In this document: piece after piece, positions 7,141 to 46,448 of the stretch
How the letters are laid out: every line of letters starts with the position of its first letter
How positions within the stretch are numbered: the first letter of the stretch is position 1
IMG/VR virus record: IMGVR_UViG_3300027736_001324
Location: 186,001-250,000 of that record
DNA length: 64,000 bases
Strand: one strand, 5' to 3'
The notes under the pieces: model-generated
What the model saw: the letters and a program-made list of their open reading frames with translations, nothing else
Told to the model about the DNA's origin: nothing
The model's database searches: none
Position numbers and translations under genes: made by a program

Positions 7141-9398
7141 CACATTCACCCGAAATCGAAAACATTATTGAACAATCAATTGAGTTTGCTAAAAGTCGTA
7201 AACACCAATATGTTACAGTAGAACATTTATTGCTAGCACTAATAAGCCACACTTCATTTAAAAAATGTATAGTAAGTTATGGTGCTGATGTAGAAACTAT
7301 GATCCTGGAAATTGGTTCATATTTGGATAGTCTACATGCTATCGTAAGCAAAGAAGATGAAGTAGTTCCACGCAAAACAAATAGTTTGGAACGTGTAATG
7401 AATCGTTCAGTAACACAAGTTTTGTTTACTGGTCGTAGACAAGTCACTACAGTTGATTTATATCTAAGTATCGCATCCGAAGGCAATAGTCATGCTCATT
7501 ATTTCTTATTGAAGTATGGAATTAGCAAAAATGAATTCGTAGCACATTGGCAGAAAAATTATAAACATAACGAAACTACTAATCTAACAGATGGTCAAGC
7601 TGACGAGATCCTTGAGGAATATACAATCAATCTAACTCAACTAGCAGCACAGGGCAAACTTGAACCATTGATCGGTCGCACAAAAGAACTTGATGATATC
7701 ATTAACGTACTTGCTAAACGTTTCAAGTCAAACGTATTGATGGTCGGTGATCCTGGCGTTGGTAAAACAGCAATTGCTGAAGGTCTAGCACAGATGATGA
7801 TTAACAAAGAAGTTCCAGAATTTTTGCAGGATCATCAACTATATAGTTTAGAAGTGGGTAGTTTGCTTGCTGGTAGTAAGTATCGCGGAGACTTTGAAGA
7901 AAAGGTCAAAGCAGTATTAGATGCACTGAACACAAAGAAAAAGACTATTCTTTTCATTGATGAAGCACACACTATGCAGGGTTCAGGTGGCTCAAACAAT
8001 GGGTCAGTTGACTTTGCTAATATGATTAAACCCGCAATCACTAAGGGCACTCTTAAAGTTATTGCTAGCACAACTTGGGAAGAATACTACGAAAGTTTTG
8101 AGAAGGATCGTGCATTGATGCGTAGGTTCTATCGTGTAACTGTTGACGAACCTAACCATGATACAACAATTCGTATTCTGAATGGGTTGAGTAGCCGACT
8201 GAATGATTTCCACAACGTTGAAATCACAGATGAAGCTATCAAAGCAGCAGTTGAAAGTGCTGACCGTTACATTCATGACCGAAAGAACCCGGACAAGAGT
8301 ATTGATTTGCTTGATGCCGCTTGTGCTAAACAACGTGTAGCAGAGAACAAGGGCGCAATGATTACTAAAGAACTTGTGTTTGACCAAGTTGAACGATTCA
8401 CTGGCGTACCTGCTGATAAGATGAAGGGTGATAACTTTGAATTGATTCATAAATTAGAATCAAACATTAAGGACAAACTATACGGACAAGATGAAACTGT
8501 ACAACAGGTACTTGAACGTGTTTATGTTTCATTTGCTGGTATCGGCAATGATAAGAAACCTACAGCAAGTTTCTTATTCTTAGGACCAACTGGTACTGGT
8601 AAGACTGAACTTGCTAAACTATTGAGTAAGAACTTAGATATGCCATTGCTTAAGTATGATATGAGTGAGTATGGAGAGAAGCATAGTGTTAGCAGTTTGA
8701 TTGGACCTCCTCCTGGATATGTTGGCTTTGGTGACAGTCAAGTGAGTGGTGGACGATTGATTAATGACTTGAGTAAGAACCCACATAGTATCATGTTATT
8801 TGATGAAGTTGAGAAAGCACATCCAGATATCTTTAATATCTTCTTACAGATGTTGGATGAAGGTCATATCACTGGATCTAATGGCAAGCAAGTTAACTGT
8901 AAGAACAGTATCATTATCATGACCAGTAACTTGGGTAGTAGTGATAGTGAACGCAACAACATTGGATTTGGTAATCAAGAGAAGACCGGTGAAGATGATA
9001 GAGCATTGAAAGAATTCTTTAAACCTGAGTTTAGAAATCGTGTTGACTTGATTTGCAAGTTTAACAAGTTAGATACCCTTGCTATTAAGAAGATTGTTAT
9101 CAAGTTTACCGATGACTTGAAAAAGAGTTTGGTTGATAAGCATGATATCACATTGAACTTGAGTGAGCCAGTAGTTGAGTATTTGGCAGAACAAGGTTAC
9201 GATAAGAAAATGGGCGCACGACCATTAGCACGTAAGATTGATGAATTGATTCGGGTGCCTCTAAGTAAAAAAGTATTGTTTGAACGCATTAAATCTGCTA
9301 CAATCAATGTTGTGATGACAGACGGTGCAATTGATTTTGCAGTAACACAAAAATTAACAGCGAAAGTAAATGAAAATGGGATTATTGAGGTCAGTTAA
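7137..9398 (+). CDS. clpA: ClpA-like AAA+ chaperone
   Basis: EHLLLAL N-domain, GDPGVGKT and GPTGTGKT Walker A, FIDEAH, DMSEY, GPPPGYVG, FDEVEKAH, MGARPL. Confidence 0.93.
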   Translation: MTHSPEIENIIEQSIEFAKSRKHQYVTVEHLLLALISHTSFKKCIVSYGADVETMILEIGSYLDSLHAIVSKEDEVVPRKTNSLERVMNRSVTQVLFTGRRQVTTVDLYLSIASEGNSHAHYFLLKYGISKNEFVAHWQKNYKHNETTNLTDGQADEILEEYTINLTQLAAQGKLEPLIGRTKELDDIINVLAKRFKSNVLMVGDPGVGKTAIAEGLAQMMINKEVPEFLQDHQLYSLEVGSLLAGSKYRGDFEEKVKAVLDALNTKKKTILFIDEAHTMQGSGGSNNGSVDFANMIKPAITKGTLKVIASTTWEEYYESFEKDRALMRRFYRVTVDEPNHDTTIRILNGLSSRLNDFHNVEITDEAIKAAVESADRYIHDRKNPDKSIDLLDAACAKQRVAENKGAMITKELVFDQVERFTGVPADKMKGDNFELIHKLESNIKDKLYGQDETVQQVLERVYVSFAGIGNDKKPTASFLFLGPTGTGKTELAKLLSKNLDMPLLKYDMSEYGEKHSVSSLIGPPPGYVGFGDSQVSGGRLINDLSKNPHSIMLFDEVEKAHPDIFNIFLQMLDEGHITGSNGKQVNCKNSIIIMTSNLGSSDSERNNIGFGNQEKTGEDDRALKEFFKPEFRNRVDLICKFNKLDTLAIKKIVIKFTDDLKKSLVDKHDITLNLSEPVVEYLAEQGYDKKMGARPLARKIDELIRVPLSKKVLFERIKSATINVVMTDGAIDFAVTQKLTAKVNENGIIEVS

Positions 9399-13481: not shown

Positions 13482-13565
13482 ATGAGTTGGTTTAGACATA
13501 AGCCCCCAAAATATCCCCCTAAACCACAGAAGCCTGATCCCAAAAATGAACCTAAAAGAACTTAA
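13482..13565 (+). CDS. 27-aa Pro/Lys-rich micro-ORF
   Basis: MSWFRHKPPKYPPKPQKPDPKNEPKRT; ATG 5 nt after TAAATA; overlaps start of 13546 ORF. Confidence 0.45.
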   Translation: MSWFRHKPPKYPPKPQKPDPKNEPKRT

Positions 13566-16500
13566 TAGTTTTAAACTAAGTGACGCAGTTACATTCCACG
13601 ACAAACTTAACCCTAAGTTATGGAATAGCACTAAGTTGCGCCCAGATGTTAGAGAACGGCTATTAATAATAGCACAAGACTTTTTACAAGAATTAGGGGT
13701 AAACGATTTAGATGTTAAAGATATAACAATATCTGGCAGTAACGCAGCGTTTAGTTACACTAAGCATAGTGATTTGGATTTACATATATTAGTAGACATG
13801 GGTAACTTACCTGTAGATGAAGTATATAGAGAATTATTTACAGCAAAGAAAACAATATATAATGACACACATGACATAAGAATTCATACTATTCCAGTAG
13901 AATTATATGTACAGGATAGTAGACAACCTGTAGTAAGTTTAGGTGAATATAGTGTAATGAACGACCAGTGGATAAGAATACCCACTAAGCGTAGAAGTGA
14001 TTTTGACCAAACCGCCACCAAAAGCAAATATGAAAAGTTATTAAGTTTAATAGAGATCGCCCTCAAGTCAAAGAAGTATAGCAAAGTAAAACATATAATA
14101 GACACAATCAAAAGATATAGACAAGCAGGTTTAGATAAAGGTGGTGAGTTTGGTCCTGAGAATTTAGCATATAAGATGTTGCGTAGTCAGGGATATATTA
14201 CGAAGTTATATGATTTAAGAGACAAGTTACATAGTGAGAAGTTATCGTTTGAGACTATGTATCAGAATATAGATGAGAATGAAGAAACAAATCATTGGTA
14301 CGATGCTGGCGTGAAGGATGCTACTCGTGGTGCTAGACCTAATCCACGCACATATTTGCCAACACTTAAAGACAAGCAAGCAAAGCATCCAGAAGAAGTA
14401 TATTTTTATATGAATGGGTATAAAAGTGTTAAGCAAGGTGTGGCGGAAGGCTCCGAGAACAATAACCCAATAGCAAATAAAATATTCTTTGCTCGTAGTA
14501 ATAAAACACCCAAAGGATGGAGTTATGACCATGTGGGGTTTATAACTCAAGATGGAAAACAAATTCAAATGAGTGGGCATAAAGGCAATGATGTATATGT
14601 CACTAACGATGTGACTGATGATCCGGAGTTTCCCAAACAAAATATCAAAATTGTATCATTATCAAAACCAGTATCGGTTCCTACAACTAACTCAGTAGAA
14701 GCAGAAAATTGCGGAACATTTGTGGCAAATGTATTACGAGCCAATGGTATAAAAGATTTTGATACACAAAAACTATATAGTGTGTTCAAAAAGCCTCAAG
14801 AGCAAGGTGTGGCGGAAGATAAAGAAAATAACAATTCAAGATTAGATGAAATTTTATATAAGTTATGTAATATTGTTAAAAAAGAAATAAAAGAAAAGAC
14901 AGGGGAACACGCTGTTGCTGCTTGTATTATTGATCCTGATAACAGAATAGTAGCAAAAACAAGTAAAGACAAACACAGTAGATGGATTCATGCTGAACAC
15001 AATGCCATTGATACATATGAAAAAAAGTATGGTGAAGTACCAGAAGGCAGTATTATAGTAACTACATTAAGCCCCTGCAATGAATATGATGATAGAACCT
15101 CCGATGAAAGATTTGGTGAAAGTTGTACAGATTACATAAACAGCAAAGGCATTAAAAAAGTCTATTGTGGATATATGGATCCTACACAAGATAATTATAA
15201 CAGAGAATTTAATGTCATAGAAACTAGTGACACCGACCTTCGTAGGCAATGTAAACAGTTTGCTGATACTTTTTTGAAGAAAAATATAGATGAAGCGTTT
15301 GATACTCCACTTCCAATAACATGGGAGAAAGGTATGCATGGTGATATTGATGCACTTGCTAAATTACCCGATGGATCAAATTTAAGCATTATGTTTAATA
15401 AACAAGATAATATTAAACCTGATGACAAGACATGGATGGTTGAATTTTATAGAAACAACAGTCAAGAAGTAACAGGTGAGGGTGACGCACAAAAAGTATT
15501 TTCTACTGTGCTAGTTGCTATTCAACAATTCATTAAAAAATACAAACCACTAAAAATCTATTTCTCAGCAAGCAAAGAGATGGATCCGACTATAAATTAC
15601 GGCCCAGATGATGTTGTGCCTAATCCTGAAAGCCGTGCTAAGTTATATGATAGAATGGTACTGCGTTATGCTAAATCTTGGGGATATAAGTTTTTCCGTG
15701 CTGATAACGGTTCTTCTGTTATATATCAATTGTCAAGAATACCAAAACAAACGGCTGTGGGTGAAGATTACACCATGCAATTTGCTGCTGAAAAAACTCC
15801 ACCAGTAAGTCCCTATGCCGGCGTTAAAGATAATCAATATCGTGGTGGAATAAGTGAAGCCTCTGGTAAAAAAATCAGTTTCAAAGTACAAAAAGGCAAT
15901 GGAAAATTCTCTACCACTTTAACTGTTAACAATACACCAGCTGGAATATATCAATATGACAGTAACACTGGGCGTAGCATTGCTGAAGTTTATCCAGAAT
16001 TCAAAGGAAAAGGACTAGGTAAATTATTAGTTTTACATGCTATCTACACCGCAGCAAAATTAGGATTAGATTTCCAAGAAGATGAATCAAGAACCAGTGC
16101 TTATGATAATGTGTTAGATAGTTTAAGCAGCAACGGTTATATTGTAGATGATGATGGATATTGGTATGTTACAGGTGACGGGGAGCAATATCTAAAACAA
16201 GCATTGAACGAAGCAAGTGGGTATATCCCAAGCGAAAAAACTCCTGCAATAAATCCATACGGCGGTCTTAAAGATAACCAATTTCGTGGTGGGATAAGTG
16301 AAGCAGTTTCTCCTAAATATGTAACTAGAGTTGATATGACACCCATTAAAGATTTTGAATCTGGTATGAAAACATATTATGGAACAGATGATTGGCATGA
16401 AAGCGGGTTAGAAAAGAAAGATAACTTCACACAAGAAATGAAGGGTTTATATGCAGGTGAACCACATCGTACAGCATTATATGCTAGTGGCAATGCAAGT

Positions 16501-17001
16501 AAAACTAGATTCTTAGAATTGAATGATCCTAAAACAGGTCAACCTGTCGTATATTTTGATAAGAAAGATATCCCTAGAATTCGCAACACAAAGACATATG
16601 TTAGTGTGTTTGATGCTAGTAGATTTAAAAAGTTACCAACAGGGGAATACTTTAGTGAGAACCCTGGTAAACCATTGAAACAAGAAGAAATAACCGATCC
16701 TTTCAAGTATATGACGAACAATGGTTGGGTAGTAAGAGTAACTGATGATATTCAAAAAGAATTCAAAAAGGCACAACAACTACATAAAGCAGGCAAGATA
16801 GACCATTATGGTGGTGAAAACTTGACGGAAGCAAGTGGGTATATCCCAAGCGAAAAACAAAAGAATGATCCTAGATATAGCACCGCACTAACAATAGATG
16901 TACACCCAGATTCTATAAAAAAGAACGCAAAAGCCTTCTATTGGAACACCAGTAGAGCAGGAATCCCCCCAACTGCTAAAGCAAACGGCAAAATCTATTA
17001 A
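13546..17001 (+). CDS. multi-module polyprotein: Pol-beta nucleotidyltransferase, permuted NlpC/P60-like, Zn deaminase, GNAT and unknown modules
   Basis: GSNA..DLDLH..VELYVQD; DHVGF..NCGTFV; HAE..PC..C; VYPEFKGKGLG; modules joined at xxE and QGVAE repeats. Confidence 0.8.
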   Translation: MNLKELNSFKLSDAVTFHDKLNPKLWNSTKLRPDVRERLLIIAQDFLQELGVNDLDVKDITISGSNAAFSYTKHSDLDLHILVDMGNLPVDEVYRELFTAKKTIYNDTHDIRIHTIPVELYVQDSRQPVVSLGEYSVMNDQWIRIPTKRRSDFDQTATKSKYEKLLSLIEIALKSKKYSKVKHIIDTIKRYRQAGLDKGGEFGPENLAYKMLRSQGYITKLYDLRDKLHSEKLSFETMYQNIDENEETNHWYDAGVKDATRGARPNPRTYLPTLKDKQAKHPEEVYFYMNGYKSVKQGVAEGSENNNPIANKIFFARSNKTPKGWSYDHVGFITQDGKQIQMSGHKGNDVYVTNDVTDDPEFPKQNIKIVSLSKPVSVPTTNSVEAENCGTFVANVLRANGIKDFDTQKLYSVFKKPQEQGVAEDKENNNSRLDEILYKLCNIVKKEIKEKTGEHAVAACIIDPDNRIVAKTSKDKHSRWIHAEHNAIDTYEKKYGEVPEGSIIVTTLSPCNEYDDRTSDERFGESCTDYINSKGIKKVYCGYMDPTQDNYNREFNVIETSDTDLRRQCKQFADTFLKKNIDEAFDTPLPITWEKGMHGDIDALAKLPDGSNLSIMFNKQDNIKPDDKTWMVEFYRNNSQEVTGEGDAQKVFSTVLVAIQQFIKKYKPLKIYFSASKEMDPTINYGPDDVVPNPESRAKLYDRMVLRYAKSWGYKFFRADNGSSVIYQLSRIPKQTAVGEDYTMQFAAEKTPPVSPYAGVKDNQYRGGISEASGKKISFKVQKGNGKFSTTLTVNNTPAGIYQYDSNTGRSIAEVYPEFKGKGLGKLLVLHAIYTAAKLGLDFQEDESRTSAYDNVLDSLSSNGYIVDDDGYWYVTGDGEQYLKQALNEASGYIPSEKTPAINPYGGLKDNQFRGGISEAVSPKYVTRVDMTPIKDFESGMKTYYGTDDWHESGLEKKDNFTQEMKGLYAGEPHRTALYASGNASKTRFLELNDPKTGQPVVYFDKKDIPRIRNTKTYVSVFDASRFKKLPTGEYFSENPGKPLKQEEITDPFKYMTNNGWVVRVTDDIQKEFKKAQQLHKAGKIDHYGGENLTEASGYIPSEKQKNDPRYSTALTIDVHPDSIKKNAKAFYWNTSRAGIPPTAKANGKIY
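14434..14451 (+). repeat. QGVAEG junction repeat copy 1
   Basis: CAAGGTGTGGCGGAAGGC. Confidence 0.95.
14803..14820 (+). repeat. QGVAE junction repeat copy 2
   Basis: CAAGGTGTGGCGGAAGAT. Confidence 0.95.
15790..16304 (+). repeat. 71-bp imperfect direct repeat flanking GNAT module
   Basis: 15790-15860 vs 16234-16304 (EKTPxxxPYxGxKDNQxRGGISEA). Confidence 0.9.
16210..16857 (+). repeat. 30-bp perfect direct repeat
   Basis: GAAGCAAGTGGGTATATCCCAAGCGAAAAA (EASGYIPSEK) at 16210-16239 and 16828-16857. Confidence 0.95.
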
Positions 17002-17053: not shown

Positions 17054-18616
17054 ATGAGATTTAAGCAAATAGTAGAAAATTCAACAACAGCAGGATCAGT
17101 CGCAACCGTAGCACAGCCTATGATGACTCAAACCCGTGAAAGTGTAGATGTCAAGGGACTAAAGCCCGTAAAACAATTAATGAAGGGCACTAAAAAGAAA
17201 GGTCCCTACGCTAATAGTATTGTTGAAGGAAAAGTTAAAGAACTTATCAGCGATTTAAAAAACTTAACTTCTTATGATTTTGAAAAGAAACACAAACAAT
17301 CTAAGGCTGACGTTAGAGCCGACATGAAGAAAGTCACCGAAGATGATCTTTCAGAACAAGACTTAATCGTTATCCCAGGACAAGGTAGACTAAGAGGTAC
17401 TGGATTTACAAAGCATGACCCTGATCGTGCTGAACATGAAGGTCAAACACTAAAGAATAGTTTACACACTATCATTCGTTTAGCAACTCATTTAGACAAA
17501 GAATTAACAGTAAGAGATAACTTCCCAGAATGGGTGTCAGAGAAAGTCGGTTCAATCAAGGGTGACATGCTTTCTGTAATGAACTATATAATCAGCAGCC
17601 AAGAAATGCGACATGATCCAGATACTATAAATGAACTCAGTTCTGCTCTGTTACAAACAGCCGCACAAGCTGCTACAGACAAACGTAATCAAGCAATGGA
17701 TCCCGAGTTACATAATGCATTAGGTGGCGGCTATATGAATCCATTAGCAAAACATTATGATAATGTATCACAAAAAATGGACAATAGGGCAGCACAAGTA
17801 AAAAGAAAAGAAACGATACAAAATATCGCTTCTAAAATCGCTTCTCCGGCGGTGATGCGTAAGATGGGTATGAATGAAGGCTCACAACGAGTTGATTCAA
17901 TTGTTACTGACGCATTACGAGTAATGAAGGGTCCAGAAGTAAGTGATGCTGTACTAGCATTAAAGAGAGTATTAGGCGACAGAGCATATAATGAGCGCCG
18001 CGGCTTTTATAGTTTCTATGTTGATCAAATACATGATATGTACGGTCAGCAAGGCGTGGCGGAAGGCGAGTTAGAAGAAGATTTAAGCCGTAGAGGATTT
18101 TTAAGAGGCTTGGGCGCGGCAACGTTAGGTGCTACAGCATTAGGTGCTGCAAGTAAAGCACAGGCAAGTCAAGATTTAGGAAACGGATTTGTTTTAACCA
18201 CTGTTGACGTTTTTGGTGGAAAATTTAAAGCAGTATTAGATACACAATCTGATATACATTATTTGCCAAATCGTCACGAAGGCGGTGGCGCTATTGTTAG
18301 AAGCATGGCTCCTTTTATTATGATAAAGAACGGTCAGACAAACACTGCTATGAATGTTGGGCCAGCTGTTCAGGCTGCATTAAAGAAAGCTGGACTATTG
18401 AAAGGTGTAGAAGAAGGTGTTAAAGAAGGCAAAATTGACTTTGCTAAGAAATTACAAAAGAATGTAGATAATCATAACAAAGCTGTAGTACAAACTAAAA
18501 AAGCTGTAGGTAGCAGAATTTCTGACATTGGCGCCGGCGGCAAAGAATACAATGTAAAGACTGATGCTGCATGGGATGCTGCTAAGAAAAAAGTTAGTGA
18601 AGGTTTAAGGAAATAA
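17054..18616 (+). CDS. multi-module putative internal head protein with internal Tat-signal module
   Basis: MRFKQIVE start, xxE-delimited modules, QGVAEG then SRRGFLRGLGAA...AQA. Confidence 0.7.
   Translation: MRFKQIVENSTTAGSVATVAQPMMTQTRESVDVKGLKPVKQLMKGTKKKGPYANSIVEGKVKELISDLKNLTSYDFEKKHKQSKADVRADMKKVTEDDLSEQDLIVIPGQGRLRGTGFTKHDPDRAEHEGQTLKNSLHTIIRLATHLDKELTVRDNFPEWVSEKVGSIKGDMLSVMNYIISSQEMRHDPDTINELSSALLQTAAQAATDKRNQAMDPELHNALGGGYMNPLAKHYDNVSQKMDNRAAQVKRKETIQNIASKIASPAVMRKMGMNEGSQRVDSIVTDALRVMKGPEVSDAVLALKRVLGDRAYNERRGFYSFYVDQIHDMYGQQGVAEGELEEDLSRRGFLRGLGAATLGATALGAASKAQASQDLGNGFVLTTVDVFGGKFKAVLDTQSDIHYLPNRHEGGGAIVRSMAPFIMIKNGQTNTAMNVGPAVQAALKKAGLLKGVEEGVKEGKIDFAKKLQKNVDNHNKAVVQTKKAVGSRISDIGAGGKEYNVKTDAAWDAAKKKVSEGLRK
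18050..18067 (+). repeat. QGVAEG junction repeat copy 3
   Basis: CAAGGCGTGGCGGAAGGC. Confidence 0.95.
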
Positions 18617-18617
18617 T

Positions 18618-21293
18618 ATGAAAACAAATGAATTTTTAACAGAATTATCTAACGACAAGTTAGGAAAGTACAAAACCGCTGCAGGAAAAGATGCTACTGC
18701 TGCTGATAAAGCTGGTAATTTTAAGCGCGGCAATAAGCGTATGAGTGGCATTACCAATGCAACTAAAAAAGAATTTGCAAATGATGCTAAAAAGGTATCA
18801 GAAAGTAAGCAATTTGTTTTAAATGAATCTTTATTAATGGAAGATCCCATTTATCGTCAATTTAAAAGTGTAAGTAAGTATATTGCTGAACGTAGACTTA
18901 GCAAACAAGAAATCTATCAAATATTTGCTGATGCTGAAACCGGCATGACAAGTAAAGATACTGGTGCTAATCGTACAATGCTTGGCCGTGGTAAAGATGT
19001 AACAGGTAAAGCAGTTACCAGTGTTAAAGATGCTGTATCAGGTGTTTTAAACTCTATACAATCTTCTGCTCCAGTAGCAGCCGTTGATGTTGCATATGAT
19101 CAAGCTACAGCTGCCTTAGGAAAATTAACCGGCGGAGATAAAAGCAAGATAATGAAATCTATCATTGGATATCGTAATCTTGCTAAACAATATCCTAAAA
19201 CAGCAGGATTTGCTAAAGCAGCATTGGTTGCTGCTGTAGGACTTGCTACCGGTGGAGCAGGACTACCTGCTATTGCAGGTTTAACTTATGCACTTGATTC
19301 TGCAATTAGAGGCGATAAGTTATCAAGTGTAATTGGTAAGGGTGCCGGCGCTGCTGCGTTAGCATACGGTGGACAAGCTGCGGCACAATATGCTCAAGGT
19401 GGCGCTGATATTCCAGGAGCAAATCCACATCAACTTGATCCGTCACAAATGCAACAAGGCCCAGGTGGTGGAGGAGGTGGCGGTGCAGGTGGTGCTGATA
19501 TTCCTGGAGCAAATCCACATCAATTAGATCCATCACAAATGCAATCAGGATCCGGTGGTGCTGATATTCCTGGAGCGAACCCGCATCAATTAGATCCGTC
19601 ACAAATGCAACAAGCAGCAGGCGGTTATAAGGAAGTAATAAAGACAGTAGCAAAAGGAGATACATTAAGTAATATTGCTCAACAATACGAAACTAGTGTT
19701 GAAGCATTAATGAGAGCAAATCCTCAAATAACAAATCCCGATGCTTTAGCAATAGGAACTAAACTTAATATACCTCCAGTAAATGCTGATACTTATCTGC
19801 AAGGTGTAGGTACTGCTGCTGATACTGCTGCCAAAACTGCGTCTGGCGCATATGATAGTGTACCGGCTGCATTAGGTAAACAAGCAGCAGCCAATCGTGC
19901 CGGTGTTACTGAAAGTATTTGGAAAAATCATTCTCCTAAACTAGATAAAAACATTATAGAATCTATTAATTTTAAAAAGTTATCAGCATATGATTTAATA
20001 GACAAGAAAACTACTGCGTTCAACTGGGCATTAAATGAAAGTATTGGTAATAAAAATAGAAATATAAATTTAACTACAGTAGGGGTATATACTATATTTG
20101 AAAATGTTGACCGTTACCGTCTTGCTGTAATGGAAGTAGCAGGAGTTCCGGGCAGCACTCGTCCAGAGCAGTATCGTCCAGATGAGCCGGAAGGTAAAGG
20201 TAAGGAAAGCAAACCAGGTTTAATTGGTAGAGGACTTAATTGGTTAGACAAAACTGCCGGCAAAGTAGGCGGCGCATTAAGTAATTTTGGACATCAGTTC
20301 ACTACAAACGTTACAAAAGAAAAACTAAAAATGAATTGGACTCAAAAAGGTGAGCCAAGTGATTCAGATGAAGTAGCGGCTTTTATGAAAAGTCAAGGTG
20401 TACCAGAAGATGTAATTTCAACAGTATACACAAAGATGGGTCTACCTTTTACTATGACTCCCGCTGCAGCCGCAACTGCCCCGGCGGCAAACACAGGATC
20501 AACAAGTGCTAATACTAGTGGTGCTGGTGCAGGCGCATTTAGTTCAATGGCAAATCAATTACCTAAATCAACTAATACATCATCTACTGGCGGCACAACT
20601 ACAAATACATCAACTGGATTAACACATACAAGCAAAGCAGTTGCACCAACATCAGGTGGTGCAGGTGGGACAAGTAGTGTAGGCGGTATGTCACAACCAT
20701 CACAGCCTAATAGTCCTAGTCAACAACAAGCAGTGGCTCGCACAGTAAGACAACAGATTGATGACATTATGCATACCATAATGACTCAACATAATGACGA
20801 CCAACCATCATTAGTAAAATATTTGCGCCAACGTCTTGATAGTAGTTTTCCCGGTGATGCTACAAACGCAGCAGCACCAAAAAGAGCAGCACCTAAAAAA
20901 GCAGCACCTAAAAAAGCAGCGCCCAAAACAGCAGCACCTAAAGGCAAAAAACCTGACAACACAGTAGCGATGCCAAAACGTGAAAAATTCCGTATAGGCA
21001 AAGACGAAATCAAACCCGATAATCCCATGTATGATAAAATTAAGGCCGCTAGCGGGACAAATGAATCATTAGGATTAAACTATCCAGAAACATATGAACA
21101 AACTAATGATAAATTTAAAAGCAAAGGTCAACGTAGAGTTGCTGCACTAACCAATGAAGAAGAAAAACAACGTTTAGATCCTAAATGCTGGACTGGTTAT
21201 AAAAAGCAAGGCACTAAGATGAAGGGTGGTACTAGAGTTAATAACTGTGTCCCAATAAAAGAATCAGCAATATTACAAGGCTTAAGAGGATAA
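18618..21293 (+). CDS. multi-module putative virion/ejection protein with LysM domain
   Basis: MKTNEFLTE start, Gly/Ala hydrophobic segment, LysM (VAKGDTLSNIAQQY...NPQITNPDALAIGTKLNIP), AAPKK repeats, KCWTGY..NCVP module. Confidence 0.72.
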   Translation: MKTNEFLTELSNDKLGKYKTAAGKDATAADKAGNFKRGNKRMSGITNATKKEFANDAKKVSESKQFVLNESLLMEDPIYRQFKSVSKYIAERRLSKQEIYQIFADAETGMTSKDTGANRTMLGRGKDVTGKAVTSVKDAVSGVLNSIQSSAPVAAVDVAYDQATAALGKLTGGDKSKIMKSIIGYRNLAKQYPKTAGFAKAALVAAVGLATGGAGLPAIAGLTYALDSAIRGDKLSSVIGKGAGAAALAYGGQAAAQYAQGGADIPGANPHQLDPSQMQQGPGGGGGGGAGGADIPGANPHQLDPSQMQSGSGGADIPGANPHQLDPSQMQQAAGGYKEVIKTVAKGDTLSNIAQQYETSVEALMRANPQITNPDALAIGTKLNIPPVNADTYLQGVGTAADTAAKTASGAYDSVPAALGKQAAANRAGVTESIWKNHSPKLDKNIIESINFKKLSAYDLIDKKTTAFNWALNESIGNKNRNINLTTVGVYTIFENVDRYRLAVMEVAGVPGSTRPEQYRPDEPEGKGKESKPGLIGRGLNWLDKTAGKVGGALSNFGHQFTTNVTKEKLKMNWTQKGEPSDSDEVAAFMKSQGVPEDVISTVYTKMGLPFTMTPAAAATAPAANTGSTSANTSGAGAGAFSSMANQLPKSTNTSSTGGTTTNTSTGLTHTSKAVAPTSGGAGGTSSVGGMSQPSQPNSPSQQQAVARTVRQQIDDIMHTIMTQHNDDQPSLVKYLRQRLDSSFPGDATNAAAPKRAAPKKAAPKKAAPKTAAPKGKKPDNTVAMPKREKFRIGKDEIKPDNPMYDKIKAASGTNESLGLNYPETYEQTNDKFKSKGQRRVAALTNEEEKQRLDPKCWTGYKKQGTKMKGGTRVNNCVPIKESAILQGLRG
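19398..19613 (+). repeat. three coding repeats GGADIPGANPHQLDPSQMQ
   Basis: Copies start at 19398, 19488, 19554. Confidence 0.9.
20871..20945 (+). repeat. five 15-bp AAPK(K/R/T/G) tandem repeats
   Basis: GCAGCACC(T/A)AAAAAA-type units. Confidence 0.9.
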
Positions 21294-21295
21294 TT

Positions 21296-21736
21296 ATGTT
21301 AACAGAAGATTTAAAAGTGTTATTGGCAAGTGTTAACTCATTATCCATCAAAGCACAAAACTTTCATTGGAATGTAGAGGGAGATAACTTCCCTCAATAT
21401 CACGAATTCTTTGGCAACTTCTATGAAGAAATATACAGTTCAGTAGATAAAATTGCTGAATACATTCGTACATTAGACAGTTATAGTCCTGGCAGCTTAA
21501 CACGCTATGCTGAATTAACTATCATTCAAGATCAACTTAAGATTCCACGTGCTGAATTAATGTTTGCTGAATTGTATGAAGATAATGCTAGAATGATTGA
21601 TTTGCTTAATCATTGCTTTGCTTCTGCTACACAAGAAAATAAACAAGGTATCGCTAACTTTATTGCTGAAAGGTTAGATGCTCACGAAAAACATCAATGG
21701 ATGGTTCGTAGTGTTCTAAAGAAAGCCCGTGCATAA
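21296..21736 (+). CDS. dps: Dps/ferritin-like protein
   Basis: HWNVEG..F...H..F...Y, DKIAEYIR, HEKHQWM. Confidence 0.9.
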   Translation: MLTEDLKVLLASVNSLSIKAQNFHWNVEGDNFPQYHEFFGNFYEEIYSSVDKIAEYIRTLDSYSPGSLTRYAELTIIQDQLKIPRAELMFAELYEDNARMIDLLNHCFASATQENKQGIANFIAERLDAHEKHQWMVRSVLKKARA

Positions 21737-22296: not shown

Positions 22297-23112
22297 ATGA
22301 AAAAATTATTAGCATTAACATTACTCGCAGTATCATTTACCGCATCAGCTTGGACACAACGAGCACCAAATCCACCTCAACAATGTCAAGTACACGCCCC
22401 ATATGGATTCCCTCAAACGGCATTAGCGGTACAGCCCATTTGTCGTCAAGCATATCTAGTTGGTTATGATCCTGTCGCAAAATTACCAAAGTATGTAACA
22501 TATGAACTTCTTCCGCAAAACGCACTAGGATGCGTGGGTAGAACAAATGCTTTTGCTGCTGATCAATCTATACCAAACGGACCTAAACCAGATGACTATG
22601 CGGGAACAGGCTACGATAAAGGACATATGAGCCCAGACGGTGATCTATCTTGGGATGTTCAAGTTGAGTTTGAAAGTTTCTTAATGACTAATATGGCTCC
22701 GCAAGCTGGTTCATTGAATCGTGGCATATGGAAATTGTTAGAAACAAGTGTGCGTGGTTGGGCAGTTCAACGCAATCAAAGTTACACAGTTTATGTTGGT
22801 GGAGTATATAATGCACAAGATAAGAAAATCGGCAACGGTGTTGTTGTTCCGCATGGTTATTATAAAATTGTTATCAATAATCAAACTAAAGAAATAGCAG
22901 GATGGGCATTCCCCCATGTTGCTCCTTATCCTAACTTAGGCAATGATTTATCTAAGTTTAGATTATCCGTAGTGCAGATTCAACAAGTAGCAGGTGTACA
23001 TTTTGGATTCCCTCAGGGTGCTAAAGAATTGTCTCCGGGCCAAGAATGGCCAGTTGACTTTGGTGCTCTTACAAAAGCTAAGAGAGCCAAGTGTGGTAAG
23101 GATGATGATTAA
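22297..23112 (+). CDS. secreted DNA/RNA non-specific endonuclease (NucA/EndA family)
   Basis: Signal peptide MKKLLALTLLAVSFTASA; YDKGH, SFLMTNMAPQ, LNRGIWK, VPHGYYKI. Confidence 0.92.
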   Translation: MKKLLALTLLAVSFTASAWTQRAPNPPQQCQVHAPYGFPQTALAVQPICRQAYLVGYDPVAKLPKYVTYELLPQNALGCVGRTNAFAADQSIPNGPKPDDYAGTGYDKGHMSPDGDLSWDVQVEFESFLMTNMAPQAGSLNRGIWKLLETSVRGWAVQRNQSYTVYVGGVYNAQDKKIGNGVVVPHGYYKIVINNQTKEIAGWAFPHVAPYPNLGNDLSKFRLSVVQIQQVAGVHFGFPQGAKELSPGQEWPVDFGALTKAKRAKCGKDDD

Positions 23113-41271: not shown

Positions 41272-42089
41272 AAAAAGTATTAATAACAGGTAACAGTGGT
41301 TACATCGGTAGTCATCTTAGTAAGATGCTACGCACAGATTATCAAATATATGGATTGGATATTAATCCATCACAATACTCCGTTACCGATCATTATCAAC
41401 TCAATATCAATAAGGTGTTTAATATTGATATGGAATTTGACGCAGTAATTCATTTAGCAGCATTAGTTAATGTTAGTGAAAGTGAAAGAATGCCCATTCA
41501 ATATTACATCACTAACTTAAATGGTACAATGAATGTTATCAATAAAGTAAAGACAAAGAACTTTATCTTTGCTAGCACTGGTGCTGCACAAGATTGTGAA
41601 AGTGCATATGGTATCAGTAAACGTGCTGCTGAGGATGTGGTGCGTGAGTATTGTACAGTACACAATCCCAAAGATTACACTATCTTTAGATTCTATAACG
41701 TAATCGGTAGTGATGGGTTTGCGCCAACTAATCCAGACGGATTGATGTATAACCTGATGAAGGCTAAAGAGAGAGGCGAGTTTACTATCTACGGTACTGA
41801 CTATGGTTCAAGTGACGGTACTTGTGTGCGTGATTACGTTCATGTTAATGAGATATGTGACGCATTATCTAGTGCTATTGAAAAGCCAAGCAATCAGATA
41901 GAATGCTTGGGGCATGGAGTTGGACATTCAGTTAGAGATATTGTTAATCTATATAAAAAGGTTAACAACGTTGAATTTCTAGTAAAGCACGGACCAAGAA
42001 GAAAGGGTGACTTAGCAGTATCTGTATTAGATAATGTGTCACCCTATATGAAAGAGTTATACTCTTTGGAAGAACTACTTAAGGTCTAA
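41268..42089 (+). CDS. NAD-dependent epimerase/dehydratase (GalE-like)
   Basis: ITGNSGYIGSH, HLAA, YGISK (YxxxK), FRFYNV, RDYVHV. Confidence 0.92.
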   Translation: MKKVLITGNSGYIGSHLSKMLRTDYQIYGLDINPSQYSVTDHYQLNINKVFNIDMEFDAVIHLAALVNVSESERMPIQYYITNLNGTMNVINKVKTKNFIFASTGAAQDCESAYGISKRAAEDVVREYCTVHNPKDYTIFRFYNVIGSDGFAPTNPDGLMYNLMKAKERGEFTIYGTDYGSSDGTCVRDYVHVNEICDALSSAIEKPSNQIECLGHGVGHSVRDIVNLYKKVNNVEFLVKHGPRRKGDLAVSVLDNVSPYMKELYSLEELLKV

Positions 42090-42461
42090 AAACTTTATTT
42101 GGTTTGTTGAAAACACAACATACCAAACATCATCTCCCTCATCGTGTTCAGCAATGATACTATCATATCCGTCTGCTATTAATTCTTCACGTAGTTCTAA
42201 ATAATCTTCTTTCTCTAGTCCTACTAACTCATCCATTGTTGCTTCATATGTCTTGTTCATGGTCAATGACGCAGATATGATATATTTTCCGTATAGTTTT
42301 GCTTCACGAATAGAAGTAGTAAAAAAATGTCCTAGTACAGCATTTGGATCTCCTGTACTAGTTCCTAGCGTAGCATTATCAAATGACGAGAATTTATTGT
42401 TAGTACCGTGATAGGCAACAACACCCGAACTACTTTCAGCAATAAATTCTCTTGCTCTCAT
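42075..42461 (-). CDS. ADP-ribosyltransferase (ART-PolyVal-like) with capsid-targeting-like N-terminus
   Basis: MRAREFIAE; YHGT, GHFFT, AKLYG, GYDSI, YVVF..NQIK. Confidence 0.8.
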   Translation of the reverse strand: MRAREFIAESSSGVVAYHGTNNKFSSFDNATLGTSTGDPNAVLGHFFTTSIREAKLYGKYIISASLTMNKTYEATMDELVGLEKEDYLELREELIADGYDSIIAEHDEGDDVWYVVFSTNQIKFLDLK

Positions 42462-42462
42462 T

Positions 42463-43971
42463 TTAGTGTCTTAACAATAGTGTACTTAATACACCAGGAT
42501 CGTTAGCACTAACATCACCTTCGCCCGGAGCAACAATAACATTGTACTTCATTCCAGTTGGGATTGAATTTCTCTTAGCCATATATTCAGTATAACTTAA
42601 AATACTTGAAGCACTGATTCCATATTCTGTAGCAATACGTTGTTTCATTTCTTTAAGTGCGGCTTCATCAGCAGGTTGCCATGCTCCGTCATCAGTTTTC
42701 TTCAAGTTACCCTTCTCATCCTTAGCTAACAAGTCATAGAATAGTTTCTCTGGAACAATACGACTATTCTTTGTTGTATCTAATTTAGGGTCTTGCGCCT
42801 TTATTTTCTTCTCTTGCTCAGTGTTAGCACCTTCGCTCCAATTGATAATAAAGTTGTCTGGTTTCTTAGCTAATGCTGCTCCAGCCATCTTAGTGTAAGC
42901 ATAGAACTTAACATCAGGGTGTTTAGCAGCCATCTTTAATGCCATGTCTAAATATTCTGGACTAAAGAAGTCACCGGCATCATGCCAACGAACTGTTGTT
43001 TGCCAACCATCAGGGAATTTCTTATCACCCTTTGCTCCTGCACTTGCTTCTTTTGATATCTCACTACTTAATTGATTAAAGAATCCATCAGGATCATTCA
43101 ACAGATATGTTAATATACGACCATCACTTTGCCATGCTGCTTTAAACTGAATCTTACCGCCCTTCATAGCAAAGCATTCTACTTTACATGAACCTGCACC
43201 CGGGCAAGTATTAACAATGATTAATTTATTGGTTTGTTCATCAAGTGCAATTCCTACTAATGCCGCAAATCCAACATTGAAGAATTGTTCAAACTCTCCG
43301 TTACTATGCTTCATCTTTTCATTTTGCTTTAATAATGATTTAGGACGAATTGCTAATGTTTGTTTAACTGCATCTTCATCATATGTTTTACCATCCGGAC
43401 TCATGTAAGTAACTACGCTACTACGATGGATGTAGGGCATTTTGTATTTGTCACCTTTGGTCTTGCCAGTAGTATACTTTTCGTTACCTTTTTTATCTAT
43501 TTTAACATTACCGCTTTTATCTAAATCAGGAGTACCAACGATACGCTTCATGTAATCTTGAAATTCTTGGCTATCCAAATCACGGGTTTGTGCTGGTAGT
43601 TTAGTTGCTTCATCTAGCCCAGATAGACTACGAATTCTATCTAAGTGTTCCGAGCCTTCCGCCACACCTTTGCGATAATCTGGAAATCCAAACTTGCGAT
43701 AGTATGCTAATGCGTGACCAAACATCTTTTTGTATTCTTCAGTACCCTTTTTGTAACCTTTTGTAGCCAACTCATTTTCAATATGACGAACCATTGGCAT
43801 CTCTGCTTTTAGTAATTCTGGAGCACCTTCCGCCACACCTTGTTCTGATTCTTCATCAGGTTTTGAATCACCTGCACTAGCAACAAATTGCTGAGGTGTC
43901 ATAATCTTTATGCCACTAGGGGCTCCTGGCATCTTTGGCTCTGCGCCCTCTAATAGTTCTTTAAAGTTCAT
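42463..43971 (-). CDS. modular protein with C-terminal GP88-like domain
   Basis: MNFKELLE, two GVAEG junctions, CPGAGSCKVECFA, VRWHDAGDF, YAYTK. Confidence 0.72.
   Translation of the reverse strand: MNFKELLEGAEPKMPGAPSGIKIMTPQQFVASAGDSKPDEESEQGVAEGAPELLKAEMPMVRHIENELATKGYKKGTEEYKKMFGHALAYYRKFGFPDYRKGVAEGSEHLDRIRSLSGLDEATKLPAQTRDLDSQEFQDYMKRIVGTPDLDKSGNVKIDKKGNEKYTTGKTKGDKYKMPYIHRSSVVTYMSPDGKTYDEDAVKQTLAIRPKSLLKQNEKMKHSNGEFEQFFNVGFAALVGIALDEQTNKLIIVNTCPGAGSCKVECFAMKGGKIQFKAAWQSDGRILTYLLNDPDGFFNQLSSEISKEASAGAKGDKKFPDGWQTTVRWHDAGDFFSPEYLDMALKMAAKHPDVKFYAYTKMAGAALAKKPDNFIINWSEGANTEQEKKIKAQDPKLDTTKNSRIVPEKLFYDLLAKDEKGNLKKTDDGAWQPADEAALKEMKQRIATEYGISASSILSYTEYMAKRNSIPTGMKYNVIVAPGEGDVSANDPGVLSTLLLRH
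43654..43842 (-). repeat. GVAEG junction repeats copies 4-5
   Basis: 43654-43671 (AAAGGTGTGGCGGAAGGC) and 43825-43842 (CAAGGTGTGGCGGAAGGT) on minus strand. Confidence 0.95.
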
Positions 43972-46448
43972 TTCTTATTGTTCCTAATGTATTGTTCAGC
44001 AAGCATTACTAATTCATGTAGTTCTTCAATGCTTTCGCAATGCCATCTACGCAAACTTTTATTTATATTGCTATTTGGATCGTGTGCTGTTTTTGCACCA
44101 GTACGATGTTTCTTCATTCCACGCATTCTAGCACAGAATGATTTACGACGGGCAGCGGCTTTGCTACCTTTTTTAAGTTTGCTTGGTTTAGTTGTTACTG
44201 CTGTTTGAATCTTGCTGCCTGGATGACTACGGCGATAACTGGCTACACTCTTTTTACTCATCCCACCTGCACGTTTATTATTGTGCTTTGACCAATTCTC
44301 GCCCTCATCAACTTCTTTCTTTGCCATGCCGATACCATCACAAGCACCGCATTTATACTTTTTAGCGCCCGGTACGTCATTAGCAGGAAGAATTTTTCCG
44401 TCAGGTGCTTTCCATAAAGTACCACGACCGTTACATCTTTTACAACTAGTATTAGGGTTCTTTACAGTGGCACCTGGCATGTAGTCACTCTTGCTGAAAC
44501 CGCCTGGCAAGCCTTCCGCCACACCTTGCTGACCCGGCACTGTATCAACAATGTTTATCATTTTATCAGGAACTATTTGTACAGGAACATTGCCGTTGTA
44601 TCCGGCGGCTTGGTATGCGATAAATCTATGATTCCCATCTATTACAAAAAGTTTACCCTTGTTATTCCAAACAACTAACGGACCTAATTTCCCATTTTGT
44701 TTTAGTTGTGGTAAAAGATGGTTATTGACCCATTGAGCAACCTTTGGATCCTTCATTGACTTACCATTTTCCCACATTTGTAATTTATTAAAAGGTGCCT
44801 CAGTTACTGGCAAACTTTTCTTTATCCTGTCATCAACAGTAGCACCTTTATAAGCAGGATTTGTATAGATAGTTACTAGTTGCTGTTCCAAGCCTTCCGC
44901 TACACCTTGCTGTTGTTCTGCCTTTACAAATTGATTGGGTCTTGGCATATCTAACCTGCGTGGATCATTCATTATGGCAGGATCTTGCATTAATTTGCTT
45001 TTAGGATTAATCCAGAATCCAACCATTGTTCCTTTTAAGGGTAATGAACCTTTTGGAACAACTACTGCTTCTTCAAATTCACCACCTGCTTTGGCAGTAG
45101 GTTCAGCATATTTTGCTTTGCCTTTTGCGTTAGTTCTTGCCATTGGGTCTGTGTTCTGTGACCGTGCTTCACCGTCTTTTTTTAGATACGGGTTAAATGC
45201 TAGACCTTTGATATTTGTACTTTGACTTGTACCTAGTGTTTTGAAATTGCTTTCGACTGCATTACGATCTAAAACTAGTATTGCATCTCTACCAATGCCA
45301 GCCATTTGATTGCTTGCATTTGATCCACTGGCATAGCCCCAATCTCTGGTCACGCTTACTGTAGGCAGTTTAGTCTGAGCCGAGGTTGCTGCCTGCGGAC
45401 TAGTTGCTGATCGGATACTACCGGACGATAGCATTCCTTTAAGACCGTTTGCATCCGTAGCATGATAAAGATAGTTTCCGCCTATACCTTCATTTAGCCC
45501 TTCCGCTACACCTTGCTTGTCAATACTTCCCCGTATACCGCATTTAGCACAATGATATTGTGTTAGCGTTGGGTGTTCTTTTTTCTTTACAGGACCATGG
45601 CAATGTGGGCAGGTACCTGTGGCCATTGCCTTGACTTCTTTACTCATATCTTCTTTGGAGCCTTCCGCCACACCTTTTGATGAAGCAGTTGGAGATTGCA
45701 GTGCCCTAGTTTTAACTCCAGGCATGCCACCTAATGTCGCTAATTTTTTAACCCAGCCTTCAGCGTCAGTATCATTAAGAGATGTAACTACAGTGCCATC
45801 GGGGTCAATAGAATCTATACCAGTAAGTTTATCGCTAGCATATCCTGTATTATCAAAATAATGTCCAGGTACTGTACCAACTTTATTAGAACGATCTAAG
45901 CGAGTTTTATACTCAGCATCCCCTTTTTGTTTGTGTACCTCTAAACCTTTAGAAATTGCTGCACGAACTTGTTGTTGTTGTGTGGTTTCAGTAGAGCCTT
46001 CCGCCACACCTTGTTCTTCAATATTAGGGTTATTGATTTGTTCTGCTACACTATTCAATTTGTCATTGCTAACTGTAACAAAACTATACATCCAACCATC
46101 TAAACTAACACCCTTATCTAATTGATTCTTAATATGTATAGCATTTTTAATAATTTCACGAATCTCGCCTTGAGCCATTCCATCAATTTGCTCATCTTCC
46201 ATAGCATAACCTTCGGTTTTGGGCTTCTTCCCAGCCTTTTTCATGGCAATGGCAATTGCGGCCTGTCGTTTTGGGTTAGCCGCTTCATCTGTTGCTGACT
46301 TTTTTAATGCATCCGCTGTTGGAGCACCTTTACTTCCGGGCTTACGCATATGTTCACCGGAACCATTCTTGATTCGGTCACGCTTGGCATGTATGTTTGC
46401 CCATAACCCAGGCTTTTTGTTTTCGGATATAATTTCACTAAATCTCAT
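43968..46448 (-). CDS. multi-module polyprotein: Zn ribbon, ART-like, ParB-like, CxxCxGxG and basic modules
   Basis: MRFSEIISE; five GVAEG junctions; CPHC..CAKC; LYHAT..SVTR..EEAV; IDGNHR; CKRCNGRG..CGACDGIG; RRKSFCARM. Confidence 0.8.
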   Translation of the reverse strand: MRFSEIISENKKPGLWANIHAKRDRIKNGSGEHMRKPGSKGAPTADALKKSATDEAANPKRQAAIAIAMKKAGKKPKTEGYAMEDEQIDGMAQGEIREIIKNAIHIKNQLDKGVSLDGWMYSFVTVSNDKLNSVAEQINNPNIEEQGVAEGSTETTQQQQVRAAISKGLEVHKQKGDAEYKTRLDRSNKVGTVPGHYFDNTGYASDKLTGIDSIDPDGTVVTSLNDTDAEGWVKKLATLGGMPGVKTRALQSPTASSKGVAEGSKEDMSKEVKAMATGTCPHCHGPVKKKEHPTLTQYHCAKCGIRGSIDKQGVAEGLNEGIGGNYLYHATDANGLKGMLSSGSIRSATSPQAATSAQTKLPTVSVTRDWGYASGSNASNQMAGIGRDAILVLDRNAVESNFKTLGTSQSTNIKGLAFNPYLKKDGEARSQNTDPMARTNAKGKAKYAEPTAKAGGEFEEAVVVPKGSLPLKGTMVGFWINPKSKLMQDPAIMNDPRRLDMPRPNQFVKAEQQQGVAEGLEQQLVTIYTNPAYKGATVDDRIKKSLPVTEAPFNKLQMWENGKSMKDPKVAQWVNNHLLPQLKQNGKLGPLVVWNNKGKLFVIDGNHRFIAYQAAGYNGNVPVQIVPDKMINIVDTVPGQQGVAEGLPGGFSKSDYMPGATVKNPNTSCKRCNGRGTLWKAPDGKILPANDVPGAKKYKCGACDGIGMAKKEVDEGENWSKHNNKRAGGMSKKSVASYRRSHPGSKIQTAVTTKPSKLKKGSKAAARRKSFCARMRGMKKHRTGAKTAHDPNSNINKSLRRWHCESIEELHELVMLAEQYIRNNKK
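44511..46013 (-). repeat. GVAEG junction repeats copies 6-10
   Basis: 44511-44528, 44892-44909, 45498-45515, 45660-45677, 45996-46013. Confidence 0.95.

Follow-up and report, generated by a model that had tools for sequence, protein, structure and literature searches.

A twin-arginine signal in the interior of a modular jumbo-phage polyprotein and its possible exposure by the head protease

The DNA analysed here (the window, 64,000 nucleotides) corresponds to bases 186001-250000 of a 263,709-bp virus record of IMG/VR, IMGVR_UViG_3300027736_001324, which is estimated to be 69% complete and has a G+C content of 37%. It contains an open reading frame (ORF) of 520 amino acids (aa) that carries a twin-arginine translocation (Tat) signal peptide in the middle of the protein, behind a G-V-A-E-G junction. 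The signal, the junction motif, a head-protease gene, the leaders of the encoded proteins and the pattern across relatives were all observed. In our estimate, there is about an even chance that the head protease cuts the protein after Glu and thereby exposes the Tat signal, and that the resulting 11.5-kDa piece is injected with the DNA and exported by the host Tat system. The ORF was divided into the following features (positions are those of the window), and the coordinates put forward in an earlier reading of this DNA, referred to below as the original prediction, were all correct.

17054..18616 (+): ORF of 520 aa, modular polyprotein with an internal Tat signal
17054..17077 (+): leader M-R-F-K-Q-I-V-E, resembling the T4 capsid-targeting sequence, with I-x-E at its end
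17078..18052 (+): hydrophilic N-terminal carrier region, aa 9-333, conserved in homologues
18053..18067 (+): junction G-V-A-E-G, aa 334-338, with a putative prohead-protease cut after E337 (18062-18064)
18068..18079 (+): spacer E-L-E-E, aa 339-342, with a second L-x-E site (L340-E-E342) ending at 18079
18080..18166 (+): Tat signal peptide, aa 343-371, from D-L-S-R-R-G-F-L-R to K-A-Q-A
18167..18415 (+): cargo module S372-E454, 83 aa, 8.7 kDa, with an AlphaFold2 model
18404..18430 (+): degenerate junctions G-V-E-E-G and V-K-E-G, with putative cuts after E454 and E458
18416..18613 (+): basic C-terminal tail, 66 aa (aa 455-520), conserved

The major capsid protein of this freshwater jumbo phage was 62-66% identical to those of jumbo phages of Vibrio, Pseudomonas (PA5oct), Escherichia (Asteriusvirus) and Sinorhizobium. 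The stretch was present in numerous metagenomes of lakes and other fresh waters dated 2017 to 2025, and contigs assembled from other lake-metagenome runs spanned positions 17950-18605 with no differences. An assembly artefact is unlikely in view of these exact contigs, among which the best-matching runs may represent the sample of origin. A tblastn search of 50,697 phage records with the 520-aa ORF gave no matches, no relatives were found among 185,579 species genomes, and a search for relatives with a single protein as the query returned only two close loci. Among metagenomic homologues (n = 571), the N-terminal region and the C-terminal tail were conserved and the cassettes between them varied; the tail was common to orthologues with different cargos (P0002, P0086 and P0110). 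When the N-terminal region, the cargo and the tail were compared with Pfam, PHROGs and NCBIfam, Tat-signal models alone gave matches. The N-terminal part was poorly modelled, with a predicted local distance difference test (pLDDT) value of 0.53 in the ESM Atlas, where its look-alikes were exclusively viral hypothetical proteins.

The internal Tat signal

The S-R-R-G-F-L-R motif at aa 345-351 corresponds to the Tat consensus S/T-R-R-x-F-L-K. It is followed by an h-region of 16 uncharged, Gly/Ala-rich residues (mean Kyte-Doolittle value of 1.15 over 17 residues) and by a c-region consisting of Lys and an A-Q-A signal-peptidase site (K-A-Q-A, then S). The NCBIfam model TIGR01409 (TAT_signal_seq) recognized the stretch with 17.6-20.6 bits against a cut-off of 16.7. 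A strict Tat-like pattern was detected in one of the 294 ORFs of the genome record and in none of 200 shuffled proteomes, on the basis of which a chance occurrence of the pattern was rejected. The model score above the cut-off and the shuffling result bear out the original prediction that a Tat signal lies in mid-protein after GVAEG, and the signal itself is very probably real and under selection. It was disordered in the AlphaFold2 model, and the signal-plus-cargo fragment gave weak matches, all below 0.8, to Tat-signal-bearing proteins in the ESM Atlas.

The signal starts at aa 343 of 520, with no usable internal start codon, and reaches an N-terminal position only after a cut at E337 or E342. 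A cut after E342 leaves D-L-S-R-R as the new N-terminus; n-regions of 2-4 residues are normal for Tat signals, e.g., that of E. coli CueO. Upstream of the signal, no transmembrane helix was found (segments there reached a mean Kyte-Doolittle value of at most 0.83 over 17 residues), nor were Sec-inserted transmembrane helices of the dual Sec-Tat (class IV) type. The sole moderately hydrophobic segments of the protein were the h-region and one strand of the cargo, and the h-region, judged by its mean value, appears too weakly hydrophobic for a stable membrane anchor.

The internal position could also be explained by a translation start within the ORF, with the junction DNA GGCGGAAGG acting as a weak ribosome-binding site for a separate Tat precursor made from a start just upstream of the twin arginine (RR). 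Such a start would suit the G-V-A-E-A-D-M-S/N-R-R class of relatives, which have an ATG 5-6 nt after GGAAG and two codons ahead of RR. Across classes, however, the residue two before RR has only its hydrophobic character in common (L, I, V or M), most junctions have no start codon at a usable distance and GGAAGG is, in our own judgement, a poor match to the Shine-Dalgarno sequence. The codons of the window copy from the junction to RR read GAG TTA GAA GAA GAT TTA AGC and include no start codon, on which ground an internal start was rejected for this copy; we regard this explanation as highly improbable.

Junctions, head protease and leaders

The junction pattern [QK]-G-V-A-E-[GED] occurred 12 times in the 264-kb record, each time in frame on the coding strand, in five large ORFs, and not once in four cultured relatives (1.46 Mb in total). 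The junction is thus not a product of chance. No mention of GVAEG in phages was found in the literature searched. The second junction of the ORF reads K-G-V-E-E-G in full and begins at aa 450 (position 18401). Where GVAEG was mutated, in the homologues P0005, P0121 and P0122, the proximal L-E-E was kept.

The junction was coded by a near-invariant 15-mer, GGTGTGGCGGAAGGC, composed partly of rare codons, with GTG making up 10% of the Val codons and GCG 6.5% of the Ala codons; the probability of these exact codons given the peptide was 4.7e-4. In the window, the 15-mer started at 14437, 18053, 43668, 43839, 44525, 44906, 45512, 45674 and 46010, the DNA of the 520-aa ORF's own junction at 18053..18067, GGCGTGGCGGAAGGC, being one base off the family sequence. 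All four junctions of a distant relative, L009, were coded by the same 15-mer, which was also found in 120 IMG/VR contigs, where 145 of its 160 matches were in frame in long open frames, mostly after Gln. A 15-mer that stays near-invariant despite its rare codons is conserved at the level of DNA as well as protein, and conservation beyond the needs of the peptide suggests that cassettes are exchanged by crossover here or that the 15-mer is an RNA/DNA signal.

Relative to the ORF of the window, the homologue P0002 has an extra cassette inserted exactly at the G-V-E-E-G/V-K-E-G junctions (18404..18430). Lake contigs showed other sequence contexts joining at 17628, 18071 and 18108 (loose ends, runs X1 and X7): at 17628 the joined sequence places a GVAEG junction in front, at 18071 the upstream context is different and at 18108 the divergence lies inside the signal. 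Co-occurring strains therefore carry cassettes in different contexts. On our reading, the junction would serve both as a protease site and as microhomology for cassette exchange.

These data could be accommodated without any cutting if the junction were a flexible linker and recombination site, and the Tat-like stretch a Gly/Ala-rich linker for head packing or for transient membrane contact at ejection. The conservation of third codon positions in the 15-mer despite its rare codons, seen in the viral matches and in L009, would agree with this explanation, as would cassettes inserted or swapped exactly at junctions; both point to a role at the DNA level that needs no proteolysis. A linker does not account for the invariant RR-G-F-L-[KR] and the preserved n-h-c and A-x-A architecture described below, for the recognition of the stretch by hidden Markov models of Tat signals or for its coupling to a cargo acting on peptidoglycan. 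Moreover, the DNA-level role and cleavage are not exclusive, and we hold the linker explanation to be quite improbable.

A prohead protease gene of the Peptidase_S77 (T4 gp21) family was identified with 99 bits at G000:C1:25576-26211 (-), adjoining the scaffold, major capsid and portal genes. Cleavage C-terminal to Glu is common to the prohead proteases of T4, phiKZ and SPN3US (PMC5694885), and internal proteins of T4 enter the prohead by means of an N-terminal capsid-targeting sequence that is then removed by cleavage (PMC5694885). The T4 sequence is MKTYQEFIAE (PMC8442874). At least 10 ORFs of the record began with T4-like leaders, among them MRAREFIAE, MRAREFLSE, MKTNEFLTE, MRAKEFITE, MRANEFIVE, MRFSEIISE and MNFKELLE. 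The leader of the 520-aa ORF, MRFKQIVE, fits only the [IL]-x-E pattern, MRAREFIAE and MKTNEFLTE being closer to the T4 sequence. The motif [LIVM]-x-E was followed by Gly at 6 of 13 sites in the 520-aa ORF, 7 of 16 in an 826-aa polyprotein of the window and 9 of 29 in a 1021-aa ORF, as well as at 2 of 5 sites in the N-terminus of the capsid protein and 3 of 9 in the protease itself, compared with 8.7% genome-wide. No processing peptidase domain of their own (MPTase/zincin) was detected in the polyprotein ORFs by Pfam or PHROGs.

The following course of events is proposed. The 520-aa ORF would be a head-packaged polyprotein of a T4-related jumbo phage, brought into the prohead core by its leader, as the likeness to the T4 capsid-targeting sequence suggests. 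There, the gp21-type protease would cut after E8, after E337 and/or E342, and after E454 and E458 (GVAE|G and the proximal L-E-E|D). This would free a piece of 11.5 kDa (aa 343-454) whose new N-terminus would be a complete Tat signal with an n-region of 2-4 residues. By analogy with the T4 internal proteins and Alt, D343-E454 would stay in the head, be ejected into the next host with the DNA and refold there. To judge by the confirmed signal, the piece would then be recognized and exported by host TatABC, and signal peptidase would probably cut after A-Q-A, leaving the 83-aa, 8.7-kDa beta-rich domain in the periplasm, while the remaining pieces of the polyprotein would stay in the cytoplasm. 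Tat is the export route for finished, folded proteins, and it would suit this task because the protein would arrive complete and could fold before export. Junction and signal together would form a portable address label, recombined onto many cargos in the phage lineage.

The signal cassette, its cargos and competing explanations

Copies of the signal were examined in 27 non-redundant proteins, which were chosen by an RR-containing pattern and all have the signal behind a junction, and in 62 viral loci that matched a degenerate DNA pattern for R-R-G-F-L-[KRQ]-G-L-G-A-A. The motif [LIVM]-x-E ended 2-4 residues before RR in 85 of the 89 copies (27/27 proteins and 58/62 viral loci). The background density of the motif was 0.0215 per residue, giving a chance expectation of about 6%, which is not to be turned into a probability as the copies are related. 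The motif was kept while its residues varied (V-A-E, L-E-E, I-E-E, L-A-E, L-N-E, V-D-E and I-A-E). RR-G-F-L-[KR] was invariant over divergent copies, and the n-h-c architecture and A-x-A were retained as the sequence of the h-region drifted. The DNA of junction plus signal was conserved over ~90 nt across loci with different cargos, and RR was encoded by CGT AGA in 21 of 23 loci and by CGC AGA in the other two. Around 10 of the 62 viral copies lay at or close to the N-terminus, behind a short leader such as M-K-I-T-E or M-R-A-S-E-F-I-A-E; in the others, which were internal, the open frame extended up to 1126 residues upstream.

The sequences behind the signal fell into about 28 unrelated cargo clusters, the largest of which (39 members) is the module of the window. 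One cluster consists of LysM plus an SLT lytic transglycosylase (L133, L136 and L159). Peptidoglycan, the substrate of SLT, lies outside the cytoplasmic membrane, and a cargo that acts on it is therefore independent evidence for a working export signal. In L159 (2203-5406, -), one open frame of 1068 aa encodes, in this order, a leader, a dCMP deaminase, ParB_N, the Tat signal, LysM and SLT, the leader and deaminase being of the same kind as in a 1151-aa polyprotein of the window. An ART-PolyVal-like domain was detected downstream of the signal in L157 with 28 bits, just under the cut-off. GP88 and DUF6321 occurred downstream of the signal in some polyproteins and in signal-less polyproteins in others, including two in the window. 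A single chain that combines domains for cytoplasmic and for periplasmic substrates can be understood only if it is split at the junctions, in which case export would be limited to the piece directly behind the signal.

In L136, L145, L149, L150, L192 and L133, stand-alone genes encode a short leader, the Tat signal, LysM and SLT (M-K-I-T-E-I-D-R-R...); these are candidate Tat-exported muralytic enzymes of phages and could be either endolysins or packaged enzymes. A second signal-like class lies right after GVAE|G and consists of G-W-K, a hydrophobic stretch and A-x-A, with no RR (P0110 aa 331-360, P0156 aa 118-150, L124 and L129). Possibly it has the same use, as a label of the Sec type or for membrane insertion.

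The 83-aa cargo module was modelled with AlphaFold2 from 37 sequences as six strands and a C-terminal helix, with a pLDDT of about 90. Fold searches against PDB, AFDB clusters and BFVD and a wide VIA-align search gave nothing above background (best Z of 4.8, where the best chance value is typically 7-8). A HMMER search with signal plus cargo as the query, covering the full set of 1.84 billion representative proteins, returned 48 matches, all to phage-type proteins. Among the 37 aligned cargo homologues, 15 had the signal, two had a hydrophobic stretch lacking RR and about 20 had no signal. RR was invariant in all 15 homologues that bear it, in keeping with the original prediction, which had looked to RR conservation in homologous polyproteins. 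One sequence, P0128, is a fragment that begins inside a junction. The seven differences listed for a variant strain were all located in the cargo and did not affect the junction or the signal.

The original prediction had also offered, as an alternative to processing, the capture of the entire module, signal included. In the form of a relic, taken with its signal from a cellular Tat-secreted gene and carrying a signal no longer functional, this is very hard to credit. Some copies do have Met just before S-R-R, like a former N-terminus. Nevertheless, the stand-alone Tat-secreted homologues that capture would lead one to look for were sought among the 1.84 billion representatives and none was found, nor did the 185,579 species genomes contain a stand-alone cellular homologue. 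About 20 of the 37 module homologues have no signal, and about 28 different cargos are found behind the signal. The invariance of RR and a signal DNA more conserved than the cargo, as in the variant strain, likewise disagree with a signal out of use.

The main rival to processing is that the protein stays uncut as a class V-like membrane protein in the style of FecR, the N-terminal 340 aa remaining in the cytoplasm and the module and tail being periplasmic, either anchored or released by signal peptidase. The original prediction had argued that Tat signals work only at N-termini, which is outdated: functional internal, uncleaved Tat signals are listed in a 2026 review, including that of FecR behind a cytoplasmic globular domain (PMC13673990; see also PMC5449189). 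In the window, the signal is complete and likewise lies internally, behind a soluble region. The N-terminal copies among the viral loci could act on synthesis, and the LysM-SLT cargos would suit a role in lysis of the producer cell. The FecR-style explanation leaves several observations unaccounted for, namely the [LIVM]-x-E that almost always ends 2-4 residues before RR, the junctions flanking the cargo on both sides, and the T4-like leaders and protease. It would also have downstream modules (the ART-PolyVal-like domain, which needs nicotinamide adenine dinucleotide, GP88 and DUF6321) cross the membrane in some phages only, and the weakly hydrophobic h-region with its A-x-A cleavage site is unlike an anchor. 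We consider this explanation unlikely.

As to the claim of the original prediction that the buried signal supports polyprotein processing and unmasking, the Glu-ending motif, the protease, the leaders and the hydrolase cargo fit it, and cleavage is not a logical necessity. Extended to a whole lineage of freshwater jumbo phages, the processing explanation becomes a modular system of address labels, in which cuts by the head protease would expose Tat signals (about 28 cargo families) and Sec-like G-W-K signals, the export machinery of the host would sort effectors between cytoplasm and periplasm after injection, and the 15-nt junction would be the crossover point. This wider scheme is tentative, and we rate its chances as somewhat short of even.

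Several points weigh against exposure of the signal by the head protease and export of the injected piece. Cleavage, packaging, ejection, Tat export and the role of the cargo are all steps that we infer. As FecR shows that internal uncleaved Tat signals can work, unmasking is not required. With the Pfam model TAT_signal (PF10518), the window copy scored 13-16 bits, below the cut-off of 22.7 that sister cassettes in relatives passed (22.8-23.3 bits). The module is not obligatorily periplasmic, since more than half of its aligned homologues lack the signal. The N-terminal copies of the cassette (about 10/62) could act on synthesis in the producer cell, and a peptidoglycan hydrolase delivered after DNA entry is without obvious use. 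No TatA or TatC genes were found in the phage record. The junction and module were absent from Vibrio phage 2.275.O, PA5oct, Escherichia phage A4 and Sinorhizobium phage Phosso, and to our knowledge the lineage has no cultured member.

Known systems and neighbouring genes

The internal proteins of T4 (IPI-III and Alt) resemble the proposed system in the gp21-family protease gene and the predicted cut after Glu, in N-terminal leaders similar to MKTYQEFIAE and ending in [IL]-x-E, and in hypervariable cargo loci; a packaged ADP-ribosyltransferase comparable to Alt is expected here. They differ in being single proteins cut once, whereas the phage described here encodes multi-cassette polyproteins with repeated GVAE|G sites. 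Furthermore, some of its cassettes carry an export signal and would be destined for the periplasm, and no T4 internal protein of this kind was found in the literature search.

The polyvalent proteins, too, are large and combine effector domains unrelated to one another (ART-PolyVal, deaminase, ParB-like and lysozyme-type; Iyer et al. 2017, PMC5512222). Entry together with the DNA is assumed for them, as is processing, their domains having different targets, and their description makes no mention of signal peptides, Tat or the periplasm (PMC5512222). The locus and its relatives showed ART-PolyVal, deaminase, ParB_N, LysM-SLT, GP88 and DUF6321 domains, and the modules of the 520-aa ORF itself matched no known family. 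Polyvalent proteins have their own processing peptidase; in the polyproteins studied here, where none was found, the prohead protease would instead cut a short conserved junction.

Class V Tat substrates such as FecR likewise begin with a soluble region and have their twin-arginine signal only after hundreds of residues. In contrast to FecR, the present signal has a signal-peptidase site, a weak h-region and flanking protease-type motifs and belongs to a mobile cassette found on many viral cargos. In the giant phages phiKZ, 201phi2-1 and SPN3US, a gp21-related protease cleaves many of the head proteins C-terminal to Glu, and these enter the host by ejection (PMC5694885). For the ejection and inner-body proteins of these phages, the branch of the protease family and the motif (A/S/G-x-E) are different, and no export signals were reported for them in the literature examined.

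No Tat signals in phage internal proteins or polyvalent proteins were found in the literature search. Injected phage proteins are known to act in the cytoplasm (T4 Alt and IPI) or to go directly into the envelope (the ejection proteins of T7 and P22). A route from the virion to the cytoplasm and, by host Tat, on to the periplasm would be one not described for phages in the literature searched. If it exists, it would be a new viral way of placing pre-made, folded proteins in the periplasm moments after infection, before gene expression, and the signal would be a natural example of a sorting signal that lies silent in a precursor until a viral protease activates it. Thousands of unannotated jumbo-phage polyproteins could then be read by one rule, namely to cut at [LIVM]-x-E and read the new N-terminus. 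The cassette of junction and signal is a possible tool for packaging in T4-like capsids and for periplasmic delivery.

The window contains further genes for polyproteins and leader-bearing proteins:

13546..17001 (+): polyprotein of 1151 aa containing a cytidine/dCMP deaminase domain and both GVAEG and GVAED junctions
18618..21293 (+): 891-aa protein with the leader MKTNEFLTE, Gly/Ala-rich hydrophobic stretches, three tandem repeats and LysM
42075..42461 (-): 128-aa ART-PolyVal ADP-ribosyltransferase with the leader MRAREFIAE (EFIAE is common to the T4 capsid-targeting sequence)
42463..43971 (-): polyprotein of 502 aa containing a GP88 domain and two GVAEG junctions
43968..46448 (-): polyprotein of 826 aa containing a DUF6321 domain and five GVAEG junctions

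The 128-aa ART-PolyVal enzyme is likely the counterpart of the packaged Alt of T4. In the 891-aa protein, the three repeats are 19 aa long (G-G-A-D-I-P-G-A-N-P-H-Q-L-D-P-S-Q-M-Q) and lie at 19398-19610 (+), just before LysM. A stand-alone Endonuclease_NS at 22297-23112 (+) has an ordinary N-terminal Sec signal (M-K-K-L-L-A-L-T-L-L-A-V-S-F-T-A-S-A), which indicates that the phage uses the plain solution for export on synthesis. A ferritin-like protein is encoded at 21296-21736 (+), and a ferritin gene also adjoins polyprotein genes in L009 and in the contig of P0131. Outside the window, the same virus record contains a single open reading frame of 6597 aa at G000:C1:53007-72800 (+). Finally, a full-length ClpB-like double AAA+ disaggregase (Clp_N, AAA, AAA_2 and ClpB_D2-small) is encoded at 7137-9398 (+) of the window; one might speculate that it helps to refold or unfold delivered proteins.

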